Shown here piece after piece: positions 1,720 through 40,621 of a DNA stretch of 64,000 bases. Source of the DNA: Schizochytrium sp. TIO01 (lineage: Eukaryota > Protista > Bigyra: Labyrinthulomycetes); the NCBI GenBank assembly GCA_004764695.1, contig SMSO01000007.1, forward strand, positions 682,001 through 746,000, in the 5' to 3' direction. The translations under genes were made by a program, and so were the position numbers. Position 1 is the first letter of the stretch. The number at the start of each line of letters is the position of its first letter. The notes under the pieces were generated by a model that searched no databases, was not told the origin of the DNA, and saw only the letters and a program-made list of their open reading frames with translations.

Positions 1720-3380
1720 GCGTTGCTGAGATCGCCAACTGAAGGATCGTGCGGGCAAGCCATCGCTAGGCTCTTGCTTGACATATCACTGAGGCTAAGG
1801 TGGCTTTAGGCGAGAACATCAAGATATGTAGTTGAGAAACCAATGACCCTTATATTCCAATCTTACTGATATCTGCAATAGAAAGCCTTATAGTCAAGGA
1901 AAACAGATAGCCTAGTCTCTTAACTTTTGCGTAATACACATGTTGTGTGTCCCAGTTTCTGAATCTAATCAAATTTACTCCGCAGTGGAATTCATTTCTT
2001 AGGTTAGTAGATCGCTAACTCTAAAAGCCTAACGTTACAAAGCCTTTGTCTCCGTCCAGTCAGTCAGACTCTATCTGATTACCCCCGTATATTTTGGCAT
2101 ACATACAATTGCACTATACAGCGCGATTATCTTTTGGGTGACCCGCTAGTTTCGGGAAAGCAAGCAATTTACTTCCAGCGTTTACCCCCAAGTCGGAAAT
2201 CTTCCATCATTAATTCTCGAACGATTTTACTTTCCCCCATATAGGCTAAAGATCGGCTGGAAAGAGGAAGCCGGGCTGCTGAATTATGCTTCGTAATGTG
2301 TTCTATAACAGCCTAATATATAAATACTGGAATCATTCAGTTTCGTTTGAAATGCCCAGCATTCAAATCTCTTTTCGACTATCTAGACTATAGCGAATGC
2401 TATCGTATAAGTGCAAATTGATATTGTATGCCTGACTGGGATATCCACAATTCCGGAGAACAAGTCTTCTTCCGATTATACCAAGTGACTCAATTTTTTG
2501 TGGACTGCCAAAAACTCTAGCGTTACAACCCTTTAATTAAAAAACTCGACAGTGAAAACGATGCTTGGCTTAAATTCATTGAATGTAAGTAAACAACATT
2601 TTAGCATAATGTATTATTGTTGAATTATTTATTTAGTTTGTGATTTCAATTATACAATATTGCTAATACAGTGAACAAGAGACGATGCTTAAGCAGTGCT
2701 GAGATCTCCAATCGAAGGAACTAGTGGACAAGACATTGCTAGAGTTCTTGGTGTCCCTTTGTAAAACCCAATCGCAATAAGGTTTACATTAGAACAAGAA
2801 TAGGCAGCCAGACTTATGTGGCTGCTGAAGCCAAGAACTAGAAGTGTGGATACACATTACCGACACCCAAGCACGGTGTAACTTGAATCGATGGTTGGAG
2901 AAGTTGAATTAACCTAACCCCATCGATTATCTCTAACTACTTTCAAGAATTTCTTAACCCCCTAATTACTACATGAATCCATCTGTCCTGGAATTCATTC
3001 CTCAGGACAGCAGTTCGCTAACACTTAAATCAACCTTATAACCTTCATCAAGCTTCTTGCCTTCATCTTTACAGTCAACCTCACGATAATCAGTATCACC
3101 TTTCAGCAAGCAGGACATATCGCGATTCTTTAAGAAAAGAAAGCTCGTGCTGAGTAATTTATGAAATCTAGATCTATGCTAAGAGGTATAGGTCTGACTT
3201 TGACAGATGGTACCTCCAGTGTTCTAGGTGTGGATTGAGCTTGGGTGTACGCCTTCCTTTTTGCTGAAATTAAAGAATCGCCGAACAGTTATAAGATTTT
3301 CGTTTGAAAGACCCTGGACTCACAGGAAGCAAAGCATTCATTGGGTGATTTGTTAATGTGGAATATTATAGCGAATGGAG
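1720..3380. repeat. Two highly diverged direct copies (~1 kb period) of a decayed coding-like sequence
   Basis: Colinear anchors: tgctgagatc..gaagga (~1724/~2696), ggaattcatt.ct.agg (1987/2990), tttcgtttgaaa (2341/3298), tatagcgaatg (2389/3367). No intact ORF. Confidence 0.6.
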
Positions 3381-6300
3381 TACATTCAAAATGCAGCTTT
3401 TCATAGAAATCGCCTAGAAGGCAACGAATTCAAAACTGTTGTATTCCTTATGTAGCCGCAGATTGTCCATAGGTTAGTTTACAGGGAGGGCCAATATATA
3501 GACGAGCGGCCACTAACGATATGCCGAGTTTTTAGCAAACCTTACTTCACATAGATATATTCTTGGTGCGCTTGTTTTAGGCTCATATGTCATGACCATG
3601 TTAGTCTTTATACAGGTAAACAGATATGGCTACAATAAGCACGACACGGAAATGACTTCAAAATCCAGAAAATGGTGGGTCATTGAAACTATATGAATCC
3701 TGAGAAAGAAAGCATTTTCCCCATCAGGTAGTTTAGAGAACCCGCTAAAATTAAAAACTACAACAATTGTACCCAGCATCTAGCTTTTTTAATTTTAACT
3801 GTTCTGTTCCTTCTATATGTAATCTTTATTTGAACAATTTTTCGTTCGAAATGTCCTCGTAATAAATATGCTATCAGAATGTTCTCGAGATGATGTCCTC
3901 TTCTGCTTCTCATTTTCTTCAATATTATGAAAGGCCGAACGAGCACAAATGACAAAAAGTAAACTGACGTGTAAGGGAATATTTTAAGGATGTCTCATTC
4001 TTTGCCTGTGAATTTTAGATGGGTTTGTACGTGTATCAAAAAGTTCATGAACAGAAAATAGATATGTCCTCCCTACGAAAGCCCAATTTGAGGACGAAAG
4101 TCATAGATTTGGCAATGATGCACGACCCATATTGGAGAATTACGAGACTAGGTCAGATCACGATACCAAGTTCTGAGATGCTACATAATTAGAAAGGGAG
4201 AGGGAGACCAACCGATTGTTTGGACTTAAACAACCATTTGCAAGGTAGGGTAGAGAAATGACCAGGATGGATTGGATATCTATATAATAATTAATACCAG
4301 CAATATTTTGCTCGCAATCGGCCCATCATCCATACTCGGTTTGGAATGTTTGACAATTTTCATTTATATATAATATTGTTATTGCTTGCTACTATTCAAA
4401 ATGTTGTTTGAAAGAAAGTATGCAAGAGAGTTAATTTAGATTACATTTTCACGTACGTAACGTGTTTGTTTTCGGAGGCAAAAAAAGTCAAAGAGCAAAC
4501 ATGTAATTATTTCACATATATTTATTTGTATTCTTTTCTGGGTATATTATATATATGCACTGTACTACCTGCTACCGTAAATATGAAAGAGACATCCGTC
4601 ATCATGTCTAACCTTCTACACTGTTACTCATTTGATGCATATATATGTAATATATATGCGCATATTTTTAAAAATTATGTACTCTACTCCTCCGTCTAAC
4701 GTAACGAAACACCACCACATAATAAATAAGAAAGATACGTCAAGTGCGTGATACAAACATTCATAATAATTGATTGATTTAATATTTCCAGACATGTTGG
4801 GTTCCCCATTGTGTAACAAATGTACAATGTTGCATTCAAGTCAAGTTCTCTAAGTTGTTTGTTGAATTTCGTTTGTTCGTTCAGAAAATAATACATCTTC
4901 ATAATATAGACTATAGTATTCCGTGCTTATAGAAAGAGGATTTTTGGATATTATATATAGTATAAGTGTATAGTTCGTTGAGCTATATAGTAGCTATGAC
5001 TTCCTTCACAATTTCTTAAACCAACAAGCTGAACATTCCACAATTATTTAATAAAATAAAGGTTTGAATTACATTCGTCCAATTAAGTTTATGAATAAAG
5101 CAATCCTTCTTTCTAAGTTTCAAACTCAAAAACACATGGAATTATGTAAAATAACACAATTTGTACAAAATATATACATTATACTTATTTATTTTTTAAA
5201 AAAACATTTTTTTAAAAAGAAAACAGTATATTTATTTTATTTTGATTAAATTTTATATTTATTAATATATTACTACTTTTTTATTATATTTATGATTAAA
5301 ATGTTATAAATATTGAGAGATTTTTGTATATAAGAGATAATCCTCTCCTTTTTTTGCATGTCGCTCCAACAATAAACATAGGTATACGTTATCGCCTCTT
5401 CTTCAAGAACTATACAGTCAAGTGATATTGTACTACTATATGACAGGTTAAAATTTATAATATGGATCGGCATGTACATAATATATGTGCTTTCATTGAT
5501 TGACTTGTTTTTAAAAATAATAAGAGAAGAATATGTAATGGAACCAACCATCCGGTATGTCAAGTTTGTATGTTCTTTTACAACTTACTACGAGGCTTTA
5601 ATAATAGAATAAAATAAAGCTTGGCTACAAATTCGCTGGTCCGAGGGTCCCCTGTGGATCCTTTTACTTGGTTAAAAACTATATATCGCTATACACTATT
5701 CAGGAGCAGCCTTGATCATACAATTACTGTTTCATAAATAATAACATACAACATATTATCCTAGCTAGAGTAAAGAATTATGTATAAAACTATATTTTAA
5801 ACTTATGCTGGCAATCAAAGATACCCGAACTAGACTTGAAGTGCACTACACAGGACTCGAAGATCTAGGCTAACTTGTTTCTTCAACCTCTAGTTCAGGT
5901 CTGCACTTAAATGTTGACTCGATTCTGTAATGAACATTCACTCCTGAATCCTCATAACCTTGCACCATTGAATCTGTTAGTCAAGCTCGTAGCATATACA
6001 ACTCTATATAAACTCACGAGTCACAATCGTGAGCTTAGAATTCTTCTAATGTTTTGCTTACATGCCTCTTCAAATGATAACTTTCAGAAATGACCTAATC
6101 TCTTTACATAGGTGTAGTACAGATCAAGTTATACCCTGACTCACTGGATATATTACAAAGAGGCCCGGTTGACATCATTCAACAGATCACAGCCTCTAGG
6201 AGTCTAAATTCTAACAGTCAAGCAGACATCTTATGTATCGTTGAAACCTGCACGCATTTAACATCATCGTAGAAGGTATCTTCTAGCTTATCGATATGAA

Positions 6301-20108: not shown

Positions 20109-21052
20109 TGCAGAACTTGCGTTTCCTATGGTGACGTGGGGCTAAGGTTCAATCGCAGGTTAAAACCTAACTCGCAACTCCAAAAAAATTCTTAATCATA
20201 TCTTTGGATAGGTAGTGCAAAGAATGCCTCTGGGGGCATGGATATCACGATCACCTACATGTTTGCATTTTTGGGATGTCCTTGAACACCTTGAATGTTC
20301 CGAGCTTGTTGTCACATTCATTGCATGGTTTCGAAGTGCAATCATCTCGGGAATAACCAACTTACACCACTGGTAGGGGGTAAGCTTGGCTTTGTGAATG
20401 AGCACTTGGCGGAGGTCAATGAACGACACATCATTCCAGCTGTCTCGATTTGATCCATGTTGTTAACTTGTTGAGGTTTCAAATTTAGGCAATCGTAGTT
20501 TTCACAGAGCCAAAGCACAAGGTAGTCCAGTATGGCGCGCAAGCCAGGTCTTTTGAAATTGATCACTCTACTAATGTCTTTGTAGACGGCGGAGGTGTCT
20601 GGATAGGCACGCTGGAGGTCATCAATCTCTGGCATTTGACATTCTCTTTTTGCTTGGTTGACACTCTGGCGTAGATAATAGTACGGCCAGTGCTGTATTG
20701 CTCGCGGGCGCCGAAATAAACCGCAGTCATAGGGATGCTCAATGTTGTCACTTGCTGAGATGCCAAACTTCTGGTTAAAGTACTTTGCTAGCTTGAATTA
20801 AAGGTTGACTTAACTTATAGTGTTTGGAACTTGGTGGTTCCTTATTCATGCCATTTTATTACCTAATCTCCAATTCTTAACAAAGTACTTTGATAATTTG
20901 AATTGAAGGTTTGATTTATTTGTAGTGTCTAAAGCTTGTTGGTTCCTTGGCCATGCCATTTTCTTACCTAGCCTCCACTTAATAATTATAATATATCATT
21001 CATATGGAATAGTTACTACCATTTAGTGGTGATAAAAGCTCGAACATTTTCA
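20109..21052 (-). mobile_element. Degenerate, internally deleted non-autonomous IS607/Fanzor2 copy
   Basis: Remnant peptides GRTIIYARVSTKQKE and DDLQRAYPDTSAVYKDI (TnpA) are joined directly to LWLCENY, LIHKA, WCKLV and CKHVGDRDIHAPRGIL (Fanzor C-terminus). Both non-coding ends are homologous to the 38-40 kb element. Confidence 0.9.
20777..20985. repeat. ~105-bp diverged tandem duplication of the TnpA start region
   Basis: aaagtactttg...ggttcctt...catgccattt..tacct occurs at 20777-20880 and again at 20882-20985. Confidence 0.85.
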
Positions 21053-37725: not shown

Positions 37726-37837
37726 GTTTGTTTGTTTGTTTGTTTGTTTGTTTGTTTGTTTGTTTGTTTGTTTGTTTGTTTGTTTGTTTGTTTGTTTGTT
37801 TGTTTGTTTGTTTGTTTGTTTGTTTGTTTGTTTGTTT
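37726..37837. repeat. (GTTT)n microsatellite, ~28 units
   Basis: Directly visible. Confidence 0.97.
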
Positions 37838-38147
37838 CGGACTTGATCAACCACCAGACCCTGCAACCTCTGCAGGAAAAAAATGAGTCTGTCCTCTTTT
37901 TGGTTCCATGTTTACTTCTCCGGTAAGAGCACAGAGGTCAAATGCCAATTCGATATAGTTTGGCATTTTATTCGGGCTCAACGGTATCAGAAATTAAAAT
38001 TTATATTAGTTGGCCGTCTTAACGTCAATTTACAAGGATGATAGTGTGCGTGACCAAGTTTTGCTGCTGTAGGCCGGACCTTCAAATTTAAAAAAATAAA
38101 AAATTATAAAATTATAAAAGAAAGTGGGTACACTCTTAGATTTTAAA

Positions 38148-38235
38148 CTGCAAAACTTGCATTTCATAGAGGTAGCTAAGACCCCATCACGAGACTAACC
38201 CGCGACTCAATGAAATGATTTTTGTTTCATCATGT
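38148..38235 (-). ncRNA. Candidate omegaRNA scaffold at the transposon right end (may extend into the Fanzor 3' coding region)
   Basis: Non-coding segment conserved in both copies. Stem CAUUUCAU/AUGAAAUG (38210-38217/38160-38167) encloses hairpin UCGCGGG-uuagu-CUCGUGA. Conserved terminus GAAA(U/C)GCAAGUU(U/C)UGCA. Confidence 0.6.
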
Positions 38236-39719
38236 CCCCTTGGATAGGTAGCGTAAAAGGATGCCTCTGGCGGCATGGACATCACGGTCTGCTACATGTT
38301 TGCACTTGGGGTTAGGGCATCGGAAAACCTTGGATGCACCGAGTTTATGGTAGATGGTATTACACTCATTGCATGTTTTTGAAGTGTAGCTCTCTTGGCA
38401 AAGAACAAGCTTGCACCACGGGAACATCTCAGCCTTATGAATGAGAGTCTGGCGGAACCCAAAGTGGCGCCAACGACACATCATTCGAACAGACTTCTTG
38501 GAGACCCGTCACTCCATCTTCCTACTCATCTTGGAGGTTTCGAATTTAGGCAAGAGAATAACACGATAGTTTTCACAAAGCCAAAGCCCGAGCTTGCGGT
38601 GAATCTCATTGGTCTTGTTCTGGATCTTGAGTTGGGCGCGATAGAAAGCGCGCTTCAAGGGGATGTTGAAATTGTCTTTATCACTGGATGCAGTTTTCTT
38701 ATTATCCTCTTGAGCTTTATCAATCCTGCTCTGGATCTTGTCAACGCGGCGACAGAGATAGAATATGGTTCTAAAATCTTTCCCTGTGTTTCATTCAATG
38801 GCGCGGCCATCAGCGTCATACATCGTCTGAAACGAGCGTACACCTGGATCCAGAGCAACGACACTGTGGTACGCCTTGGGGGTGCCTGGTCCACTGGACG
38901 CTTTTTTTCTTCTTGTAAGAAGCAGAAGTAGACATGCCCAAGGCGATTCATTTGCACACGCATTGCGTTCGAAATCTGGTCGGGGAACTTTTCTTTGCGT
39001 ATTCGGAATTCTTTTAGAAAGTTGGAGGTCTTTGATTTCTTCAAATTCCAGGTACGTGCATTCACTTCGAAAATCTGTGATTCATCACGCTTGGTCCGAA
39101 ACTTATAAAAAGATTGCTCATGAACTTTCTTTTGTACAGCGAGTTCTTCGTTTTTGGCTCGTCCCGAGTCAAGAGCCTTGAAGAAATCCAGAATCCGGGA
39201 ATCACGGATAGCCTGTGGGACTTCGAGAACCCATTCAGGAGCATAATTCCTTTCTTTATATCGGACGGCCTTCTTTTCTCCATAGAGGGCACCATGTGTT
39301 TGGGGATTCCCATTTTCGTCTACCAAGACCTGCTTCGTTTTAATATCCTTTTTGAGACACGCTTTTTGATGTAACTTGATGGCTTTCTCCTCACCCTTCG
39401 CCACATCTCGATGAAACGCAACGCCAGTATTGTAGGCTCTTCTAGTGACACCAAACCATTTAAGCAATTGTGTGCGCTCATCTTTAGTAGGGTATACTCT
39501 AACCTTTCTGGCACGGACAAGGTCATATTCTTTCTTGGTGGTCTTGCGCGCCTTCGTGCGAGCTCGCTTCTTCCTCGCTGCGTCGTCGCCGTCTATTTTG
39601 CGCTGCTCGTTTTCTGTGATGCGATGCCACAAATACGGTGATGATTTCGAGGAGGTCTTTGGTGAAGGTGTCTGAGTCTTCGGCATGTGCATCTTGGCCG
39701 TGTACCACGAGTTTGACAT
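38230..39719 (-). pseudogene. Fanzor2/TnpB RNA-guided endonuclease, ~496 aa when repaired
   Basis: RARKVRVYPTKDERTQLLKWFGVTRRAYN (TnpB N-terminus); RuvC-I VVALDPGVRSF; ILLPKFETSKM; CQESYTSKTCNEC..CPNPKC zinc finger; RuvC-III DRDVHAARGIL. Lesions: frameshift in G5 run 38878-38882, TGA at 38791-38793 and at 38509-38511. Confidence 0.92.
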
Positions 39720-40210
39720 TTTTCTTTCAAAAAGGTGTTCCAAGAGGTCGACTGCGATTTGCGCAAGTCGGTCGCGGTGCATGACCACAACTTGGCCGAT
39801 TCCGCCGCGGTCACAGGCGTCCAGTAGGGAGCACAGGCCTTGACATTTGAAGCTGACCCCGCTGCCGATGTCTTTGCAGACGGCTGAAGCATCTGAGTAG
39901 GTGCGCTGGAGATCGTCAACCTGGCGTTCTAGGTCCTCCTTTTGCTTGGTCGAGGACACTCTGGCATAGATAACAGTACGTCCAGAGCTGCGTTGCTCGC
40001 GGCCGGTGGAACCGCAATCAAAGATGCGCTCGACATCGTCGCTGGCGTAGATACGCTTGCCTCCGGGGAAGCGCGCGCAGCGCACGCGTCCGCCATCGGC
40101 CCAGCCCCGAAGGGCGCTTGCTGAGACCCCAAACTTCTGGTGAAAGAACTTTGCTGGTTTGTATTGGAGGTTTGCTCCACTTGCAGCGTTTGGAGCTTGC
40201 CGGTTCCTCG
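39523..40210 (-). pseudogene. tnpA: IS607 TnpA: MerR-type HTH + serine recombinase; -1 frameshift at ~39720, ATG lost
   Basis: FGVSASALRGWADGGRVRCARFPGGKRIY (HTH), VIYARVSSTKQKEDLERQ (catalytic Ser), DIGSG, VVVMHRDRL. The native C-terminus DTFTKDLLEIITVFVASHHRKRAAQNRRRR is in another frame and ends at TGA 39523. Confidence 0.9.
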
Positions 40211-40621
40211 GAAATAAGCATAATATATGATTAATATGAAACAAACACTACGAAATATAAGTTATCGAACTTTTCACGGTTTTTGTTATACTGTCTGTAG
40301 TTCTGCAATTGCGGAGTTCTCACCCACGCGAACTAGTTGCTAGAGTATCGATCTTCAGCTACTAGTGATAGCGTCATAAGGTATAGCTATACATGACATC
40401 TTTCTGAGCTTGCTTGCAAATGTGTAGTTGCTTCAAGAAAAAGTCCCGGCAAAGTCCGTCAGGGACGGAAAAGCTTGCGATAAGATGAAGCAAAGCTGCA
40501 TCGCGTGAGGCCCAAACTTAAGGTGTGAACAGACCAGGAGGGCCAGCAAGGCTAGAGCCACTGCTTCTGTTTAACATTCTCTGATAAAACAAAGTAACGC
40601 GAAAAGATATTCTCTGCTAAG

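Follow-up and report, generated by a model that had tools for sequence, protein, structure and literature searches.

Organization of the element at the locus

The window analysed here is the whole of a 64,000-nucleotide stretch of DNA, and the subject of the analysis is a cassette on its minus strand, which a preliminary description had read as an IS607-type transposon with a Fanzor2 RNA-guided nuclease. Translating positions 38050-40400 in six frames revealed two minus-strand genes, an IS607-type transposase followed by a TnpB-like gene. Translation and profile searches thus recovered both members of the cassette described earlier (a TnpA with a MerR-like helix-turn-helix (HTH) and a serine-recombinase domain, overlapping a TnpB-like gene). 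Comparison with paralogues gave an element of 2.16 kb at 38133-40290 (minus strand), with a flanking CAG at 40291-40293. The extent had been placed at 38148-40293; the right end (...CTAAGAG) lies instead at 38133, the left end is near 40290, and the CAG belongs to the flank. We consider the segment 38133-40290 (-) to be a dead copy, diverged by about 7%, of a 2.2-kb eukaryotic IS607-type transposon with a Fanzor2 nuclease, hosted by a thraustochytrid-like protist (probability about 0.9). The following features were located, all on the minus strand:

40291..40293 (-): CAG of the left flank, the putative target trinucleotide and target-adjacent motif (TAM); its AG is the putative crossover dinucleotide, the same as the AG of the right end (junction comparison)
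40213..40290 (-): left-end non-coding region (TATAACAAAAACCG..., with TTCGAT repeats), its inner side truncated by a 44-bp deletion (alignment with 20 paralogues and lesion map)
39523..40212 (-): remnant of tnpA, encoding an IS607 serine recombinase, with its start codon deleted and a frameshift after 39724 (NCBIfam, Pfam, lesion map)
38230..40096 (-): remnant of the Fanzor2-like nuclease gene, with three premature stops and two frame-shifting indels (translation, profiles, lesion map)
39523..40096 (-): dual-coding stretch, where the N-terminal part of the nuclease (about 190 codons) lies in the +1 frame of tnpA (layout of open reading frames (ORFs) in the intact paralogue L012, stop-codon test, depressed synonymous divergence, fold match to the N-terminal domain of ApmFz2)
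38848..38850 (-): RuvC-I Asp of the DPG motif (translation; D416 in an alignment of 108 homologues)
38548..38550 (-): Pro at the canonical TnpB RuvC-II Glu position, in ILLPKF (translation; P512)
38392..38394 (-): relocated RuvC-II Glu, six residues ahead of the first zinc-finger Cys (translation; E564)
38302..38373 (-): zinc finger, with CNEC at 38362-38373 and CPNPKC at 38302-38319 (Pfam Cas12f1-like_TNB; C571, C574, C589, C594)
38281..38283 (-): RuvC-III Asp, in ADRD (translation; D601)
38133..38345 (-): candidate omegaRNA scaffold, which overlaps the 3' end of the nuclease gene and reaches the right end; hairpins B and D are damaged here (folds of intact paralogues, lesion map)
38176..38181 (-): TCTTAG, loop of hairpin C and predicted 5' pseudoknot partner, complementary to the terminal CTAAGA (RNAalifold, single-sequence folds)
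38133..38139 (-): right end CTAAGAG, the 3' pseudoknot partner with the putative AG crossover; a guide would start just beyond, in the right flank (same end in 20 copies, unrelated flanks beyond)

Four lesions had been reported in this copy, and comparison with intact paralogues raised the number to at least eight. A 44-bp deletion after 40212 takes out the tnpA start codon, and the frames are further disturbed by a 1-bp deletion after 39724 and a 2-bp insertion at 38881-38882. Stop codons stand at 39929-39931 (TCG to TAG), 38791-38793 (TGG to TGA) and 38509-38511 (CGA to TGA), and two deletions, of 8 bp (after 38194) and of 9 bp (after 38150), affect the 3' non-coding hairpins. Identity to the nearest intact relative is 93.5%. 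The copy is unable to transpose or to cut, because it has no tnpA start, carries frameshifts and three stops in the nuclease, and has partly lost two omegaRNA hairpins. The window copy is a pseudogene copy, and Fanzor2 membership therefore holds for the family, not for a working gene at this locus.

Identity of TnpA and of the nuclease

The tnpA remnant falls into two pieces in different frames. The N-terminal piece matched the NCBIfam model transpos_IS607 with an E-value of 2e-30 and the C-terminal piece (39526-39720) with 0.006; Pfam returned Resolvase and MerR (a MerR-like HTH plus a resolvase domain), and the catalytic-serine motif YARVSS was found at 39951-39968. Truncation brings the score of the remnant against NF033518 down to 105.8 bits, just short of the cut-off (110), and the 232-amino-acid (aa) TnpA of an intact paralogue scored 142.9 bits, above this NCBI equivalog cut-off.

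The nuclease remnant matched the profiles HTH_OrfB_IS605 (E-value 2.7e-7) and Cas12f1-like_TNB (Pfam PF07282, E-value 7.6e-14), and all the motifs noted earlier were recovered, namely ALDPG at 38842-38856, ILLPKF at 38542-38559, CQESYTSKTC at 38371-38400 and ADRD at 38281-38292. In intact paralogues the protein is 601-618 aa long. The alignment of 108 homologues showed D416, G418, E564, C571, C574, C589 and C594 to be invariant, and P417, P512 and D601 nearly so. Yoon et al. described as the signature of Fanzor proteins a RuvC-I DPG together with a RuvC-II Glu that has moved to a place six residues ahead of the zinc finger (PMC10711439; 10.1101/2023.08.09.552727). The present sequence carries the DPG, a non-acidic Pro at the canonical Glu site, the shifted Glu, and a C4 zinc finger followed by RD.

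A sequence search of the PDB with an intact paralogue identified ApmFz2, the mimivirus L79 protein, as the best solved relative (9b0l_P, E-value 7e-18). The window copy being too broken to fold, an AlphaFold model was built from the intact paralogue L012:1738-3591 (predicted local distance difference test 80.3, predicted template modelling score 0.79). Its top structural match was again 9b0l_P (Foldseek E-value 3.8e-20; VIA-align Z 24.6 over 425 residues), model residues 88-618 aligning with residues 53-518 of that chain. The TnpB chains of ISDra2 and ISFba1 and the Cas12f chains aligned only from about model residue 191. A structured N-terminal domain (RuvC-R, thumb) is unique to Fanzor2 according to Schargel et al.; since the model matches ApmFz2 from residue 88 and the TnpBs only from about 191, the nuclease has this Fanzor2-specific domain.

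Phylogenetic placement was examined on a tree of 144 non-redundant relatives (LG+G4), obtained by a short search and built without named reference Fanzor2 sequences. The family fell within a well-supported clade of 38 sequences (Shimodaira-Hasegawa-like approximate likelihood ratio test 98), made up of 24 metagenome sequences, 11 from IMG/VR (including giant-virus metagenome-assembled genomes, MAGs), two short contigs from prokaryote MAGs (L189 and one untraced) and the copy of this genome. Another 27 sequences from prokaryote genomes, among them all the named cyanobacteria, lie outside this clade. Grouping with bacterial TnpBs that have a canonical Glu, set in advance as the outcome that would contradict the Fanzor2 assignment, did not occur. 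The nearest sequences found are at most 44-51% identical to the family, and exact look-ups of its proteins in the protein collection had no hit. The tree is compatible with delivery to the host by a giant virus, giant-virus MAG contigs being in the same clade, and carries no direction of transfer. L189 (PIVJ01000273.1), a 1,994-bp contig of a 'Bacteroidetes' MAG lying inside this viral and environmental clade, is probably not bacterial but eukaryotic or viral, and mis-binned.

If the nuclease were instead a recently transferred IS607 TnpB of the ordinary bacterial type, with its active site canonical, and not a Fanzor2, a TnpA that is a good IS607 equivalog would fit, and cyanobacterial relatives were indeed found at 28-31% identity. 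Such an origin is very unlikely, and is refuted at the level of motif and fold: the Pro at the canonical Glu site (the Glu lying instead six residues ahead of the zinc finger) differs from the LEDL, IEDL or IENL of four canonical IS607 TnpBs, which also have no N-terminal domain; the fold matches ApmFz2 from residue 88 and the TnpBs only much further on; and the family stands apart from the named cyanobacteria in the tree. NCBIfam NF038280, the model of canonical bacterial IS607 TnpB (cut-off 350 bits), gave 62.2 bits for an intact paralogue and at best 55 bits over the whole genome.

Fanzor2/IS607 identity of the element is thus supported, and the first reading of the cassette as an IS607-type transposon with a Fanzor2 nuclease was borne out by the motifs, the closest structure, the linked TnpA, the end features, the multi-copy host family and the placement away from named cyanobacterial TnpBs.

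Nested coding of tnpA and the nuclease

In the intact paralogue L012, nearly all of tnpA (1614-2312) falls within the nuclease ORF (1738-3594), in a different frame. Of 158 viral and metagenomic relatives, about 120 have tnpA nested in this way, as do 79 of 80 bacterial ones, with a constant frame offset. In shifted-Glu members from protists, giant viruses, metagenomes and bacteria alike (loci L031-L268), tnpA is nested at the +1 frame of the Fanzor2/TnpB ORF, the overlap being about 260-630 nt. The final 390 nt of tnpA were tested for stops in 111 non-redundant loci: the nuclease frame was free of them in 106; the third frame of the same 390 nt held a mean of 7-10 (about 7 are expected from base composition) and was open in none. 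Synonymous divergence in the nuclease frame was about 0.10 outside the overlap and 0.02-0.045 inside it. The overlapped part corresponds to nuclease residues 1-191, that is, a disordered N-terminus and the folded domain matching the N-terminal domain of ApmFz2.

Four canonical IS607 elements were examined for comparison (L277-L280; plasmid copies, Campylobacter, Paraclostridium, Moraxella, Mycobacterium). Their tnpA and tnpB overlap by 1-38 nt, the other frames of tnpA contain 5-24 stops, and the canonical Glu is kept, so that nesting accompanies the rearranged active site. Since dual coding runs through the shifted-Glu IS607 clade and is absent from canonical IS607, the N-terminal domain probably arose by overprinting on tnpA. 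We regard as likely the whole of this proposal, namely that the Fanzor2 N-terminal domain is written wholly in the +1 frame of tnpA, that this dual coding is clade-wide and absent from canonical IS607, that it probably originated by overprinting and locked the evolution of both proteins together, and that the target and TAM of the family are AG/CAG instead of GG/GGG. The Fanzor and IS607 literature searched contains no mention of overprinting or overlap of tnpA and the nuclease, including when these were paired with overlapping-gene terms, and none of AG/CAG target usage.

The nesting shows where the Fanzor2-specific N-terminal domain is written, and gene annotation that does not allow long overlaps will cut these nucleases short. 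After the AUG of tnpA, the next AUG, 124 nt on, is that of the nuclease; leaky scanning as a eukaryote-specific adaptation was considered and rejected, because the same nesting exists in bacteria and the layout is thus not a eukaryotic adaptation.

Family copies and genomic setting

The genome (64.07 Mb in 37 contigs) contains at least 22 near-full copies of the element, on contigs C4, C5, C6, C7, C13 and C30-C36, some of them 98-99% identical to each other, and older families occur in it at 66-73% identity. The preliminary description had proposed a family of the host lineage and hoped for intact copies elsewhere. The family is indeed multi-copy in this genome; the nuclease frame is open in 16 copies, and 10 encode the full TnpA. 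Between subfamilies, the ratio of nonsynonymous to synonymous divergence was 0.20-0.37 for the nuclease outside the overlap and 0.19-0.40 for TnpA, which indicates that both proteins were under selection while the family spread. Judged from these sequences, the family looks young and recently active.

One subfamily carries an identical 295-bp insert in codon 28 of tnpA (L018:1206-1500, also L017, L019, L021 and L024). Within the insert is (CCTAA)5, the unit of the telomere repeat; an intron was considered and rejected because GT-AG boundaries are absent. The insert occurs in at least five copies at different loci, four with an open nuclease frame, L024 being a truncated remnant; this distribution suggests mobilisation in trans by the TnpA of other copies. 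Furthermore, two young copies (L007, G000:C13:5818725-5822206; L013, G000:C13:3962470-3965396) lie head-to-head with old, diverged superfamily copies, no more than about 60 bp from the tip of their left ends. Such placement is far commoner than expected by chance, and there may be a preference for insertion near resident left ends.

The genes neighbouring the window copy encode ribosomal L29, an alpha/beta hydrolase, two CRAL/TRIO proteins, MaoC and a leucine-rich repeat (LRR) protein, and eukaryotic genes lie 400 bp to 6 kb away on the same contig. The contrast drawn earlier between an intronless cassette and intron-containing neighbours found no support in the neighbouring genes examined, which are long uninterrupted ORFs themselves. 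Contig ends bear (TTAGG)n telomeres, TTAGG being the unusual telomere repeat reported for Aurantiochytrium limacinum (10.1101/2023.06.15.545109). The eukaryotic character of the flanks is marked by gene content (CRAL/TRIO, LRR) and by these telomeres. Contig C3 has (TTAGG)n arrays at both ends (G000:C3:1-292 and C3:2322094 to the end) and is thus a linear chromosome assembled from telomere to telomere.

A giant-virus or mirusvirus genome integrated at the locus, with the element as its cargo and not as a free chromosomal transposon, would accord with the giant-virus MAG contigs among the nearest relatives and with the mirusvirus elements reported in Aurantiochytrium (10.1101/2023.06.15.545109). 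We hold this to be very unlikely: the neighbours listed above are ordinary cellular genes, the region has no shift in G+C, and the copies are single, scattered over many contigs and sharply bounded at 2.2 kb.

Bacterial or viral contamination, or a misassembly, could have placed a prokaryote-style cassette in a eukaryotic contig, and the cassette layout is prokaryotic and without introns, while the junctions between element and flanks are known from the assembly alone. This explanation is very unlikely, given that about 22 copies with distinct unique flanks are spread over many contigs beside degraded older families, that the window copy has decayed in place by about 7%, and that eukaryotic genes and TTAGG contig ends accompany it. 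In addition, 20 public runs, belonging to 11 studies, contained 38-73% of the words sampled from the 5-kb stretch that includes both junctions.

Element ends and target site

The right end was constant in 20 copies, with unrelated flanks beyond it. Target-site duplications were sought in 13 copies and none was found (strings common to the two flanks do not exceed 5 nt and are out of register), and terminal inverted repeats were not detected, the left end and the reverse-complemented right end matching at 5 of 40 positions. The lack of both agrees with what is expected of IS607.

At the left end, CAG ends 6 nt before the conserved left-end anchor in 12 of 19 copies (the modal distance), and at most 12 nt upstream of it in 16 of 19. 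Among copies that are otherwise nearly identical, the 3-6 nt that separate this CAG from the conserved left end are variable (for example TAAGAT, TAGGGT and ATGGAT; L002-L024, window 40277-40293). The left junction reads CAG and the right end GAG, suggesting AG as the core; GG, the dinucleotide at which IS607 elements are reported to insert (PMC13565253), is not seen there. By analogy with characterised elements, we infer an AG crossover with CAG as target and TAM and with the donor joint GAG spared. On this inference, the family would depart from the GG/GGG rule that has been described for IS607 and Fanzor2.

Candidate omegaRNA

In intact paralogues the 3' region is predicted to fold into hairpins A-D, and for the final 220 nt of intact copies the folding surpasses that of shuffled controls (z -2.65). 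All intact variants share the same modules: a 13-bp hairpin B, a short hairpin C with a TCTTAG loop, a 13-bp hairpin D, and then UUUAAAAU-CUAAGAG. With RNAalifold, columns 222-228 paired with 274-279, the six pairs between the loop of C and the terminal CTAAGA being kept in 14-16 of 16 sequences; a pseudoknot adjoining the guide is known for IS607 TnpB and Fanzor2. Stems are kept across variants through GU, GC and AU exchanges. On inspection of the variants, the stem of hairpin C was seen to persist through two-sided changes (GGAG/CUCC, GGGG/CCCC, CGGG/CCUG); it is omitted from the RNAalifold consensus (alignment A2) because the variants have it in different registers. A search of Rfam with the candidate omegaRNA returned no family match. 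A 3' omegaRNA with three hairpins and a terminal pseudoknot is what the folding models predict.

That the window copy was domesticated into a still functional host gene or regulatory RNA is scarcely credible: its pseudoknot partners TCTTAG and CTAAGAG are intact, but both genes are disrupted (three stops, two frameshifts, a lost start codon), hairpins B and D are partly deleted, and nothing points to selective maintenance.

Several observations weigh against the reading of this locus as a Fanzor2-bearing IS607-type transposon with its own target rule. Besides the assembly-only junctions and the make-up of the tree mentioned above, the NCBIfam models of bacterial TnpB score below cut-off for the nuclease, which is expected of a divergent clade and is not positive evidence. 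The case for CAG as the TAM is built from about 19 junctions together with analogy, and no empty insertion site was found. The position of the left boundary has a margin of up to 6 nt, because of the variable bases between CAG and the conserved left end. Finally, RNAalifold on alignment A2 found two predicted pairs changed on both sides, most changes being GU to GC, so that covariation is thin in this young family.

Proposed cycle of the intact relatives

In intact relatives, TnpA would excise the element as a circle and insert it at an AG dinucleotide, usually within CAG. This step, in which both the chemistry and the AG core are conjectural, is based on the protein family, the end sequences and the lack of repeats or duplications. 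The Fanzor2 nuclease, if expressed with its RNA, would bind an omegaRNA from the last ~200 nt of the element (three to four hairpins plus the TCTTAG/CTAAGA pseudoknot), whose guide would be read from the DNA just past the right end; the fold, the catalytic residues, the conservation and the complementarity argue for this step. By analogy with ISXfa1 and ApmFz2, the ribonucleoprotein could then cut vacated sites that have CAG beside a match to the guide, and repair would copy the element back, the donor joint GAG presumably being spared from cutting.

Relation to known systems

Eukaryotic IS607/Fanzor2 elements have been known since 2013 (PMC3627910), RNA-guided cleavage by Fanzor since 2023 (PMC10530073, PMC10432273) and a structure since 2024 (PMC11832414). 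The kind of element is thus already known; the family in this genome is new to it. Neither the family nor a thraustochytrid host is mentioned in the Fanzor and IS607 literature searched, and the supplements of PMC10711439 name no thraustochytrids.

The closest characterised system is ApmFz2 of Acanthamoeba polyphaga mimivirus (L79; PDB 9B0L; PMC11832414, PMC10530073), with which the family shares the RuvC-I DPG, the relocated RuvC-II Glu, the zinc finger and RD. The fold is also common to both, its structured N-terminal domain included, and each protein has a disordered N-terminus and is paired with an IS607 TnpA; ApmFz2 has a 3' omegaRNA with a guide-adjacent pseudoknot, as is predicted here. 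Identity is however only about 20%, and the disordered N-terminus has 84 residues here and 53 in ApmFz2. ApmFz2 has a GGG target and TAM with a GG core, whereas CAG with an AG core is proposed for the present family. ApmFz2 belongs to a viral element, whereas this is a chromosomal multi-copy family of a stramenopile-like protist, and its scaffold lies mostly within the ~105 nt after the stop codon and the 3' end of the gene. The elements ACa-1/-2, ISvMimi and ISvAR158_1 (Bao and Jurka 2013, PMC3627910; 'IS607EU' in PMC13565253) have the same layout of serine-recombinase TnpA and Fanzor2, the same lack of terminal inverted repeats and target duplications, and likewise multiple copies per genome.

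The 'pro-Fanzor' cyanobacterial IS607 TnpBs (ISArma1, ISXfa1; PMC10711439) resemble the family in the shifted Glu, the HTH, the IS607 TnpA and the nesting of tnpA at the +1 frame of the nuclease ORF. ISXfa1 also follows the same logic, in that its TAM resembles the insertion site and its donor joint is one base off (GGG versus CGG, as CAG versus GAG would be here). These TnpBs differ by their 28-31% identity, separate clade, prokaryotic hosts and GG core in place of AG. Canonical bacterial IS607 elements (ISChh1 of Campylobacter; the Paraclostridium, Moraxella and Mycobacterium copies) have the same order of tnpA then tnpB and a TnpA at 30-36% identity, but their Glu lies about 50 residues before the zinc finger, they have no N-terminal domain, and the two genes merely abut. 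Fanzor1 (SpuFz1, PDB 8GKH) is likewise a TnpB-derived RNA-guided eukaryotic nuclease with DPG and a shifted Glu. Its structural match to the model is much weaker (Foldseek E-value 2.3e-6, template modelling score ~0.34), it is carried by other transposon superfamilies, and its omegaRNA has no 3' pseudoknot (PMC13565253).

The dead locus is of little weight in itself; the family matters more. A young family with many intact copies, in an apparently culturable thraustochytrid, could allow the role of Fanzor2 for its transposon to be studied in a native eukaryotic host, and may be a source of a compact nuclease with a different TAM (CAG versus GGG).

Two further features of the window were recorded. 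A (GTTT)n microsatellite lies at 37726-37837, about 300 bp past the right end of the element, and a second, older and internally deleted relative occupies 20194-20980 (-), with pieces 78-83% identical to the left end, the 5' part of tnpA and the 3' part of the nuclease gene of the young family.

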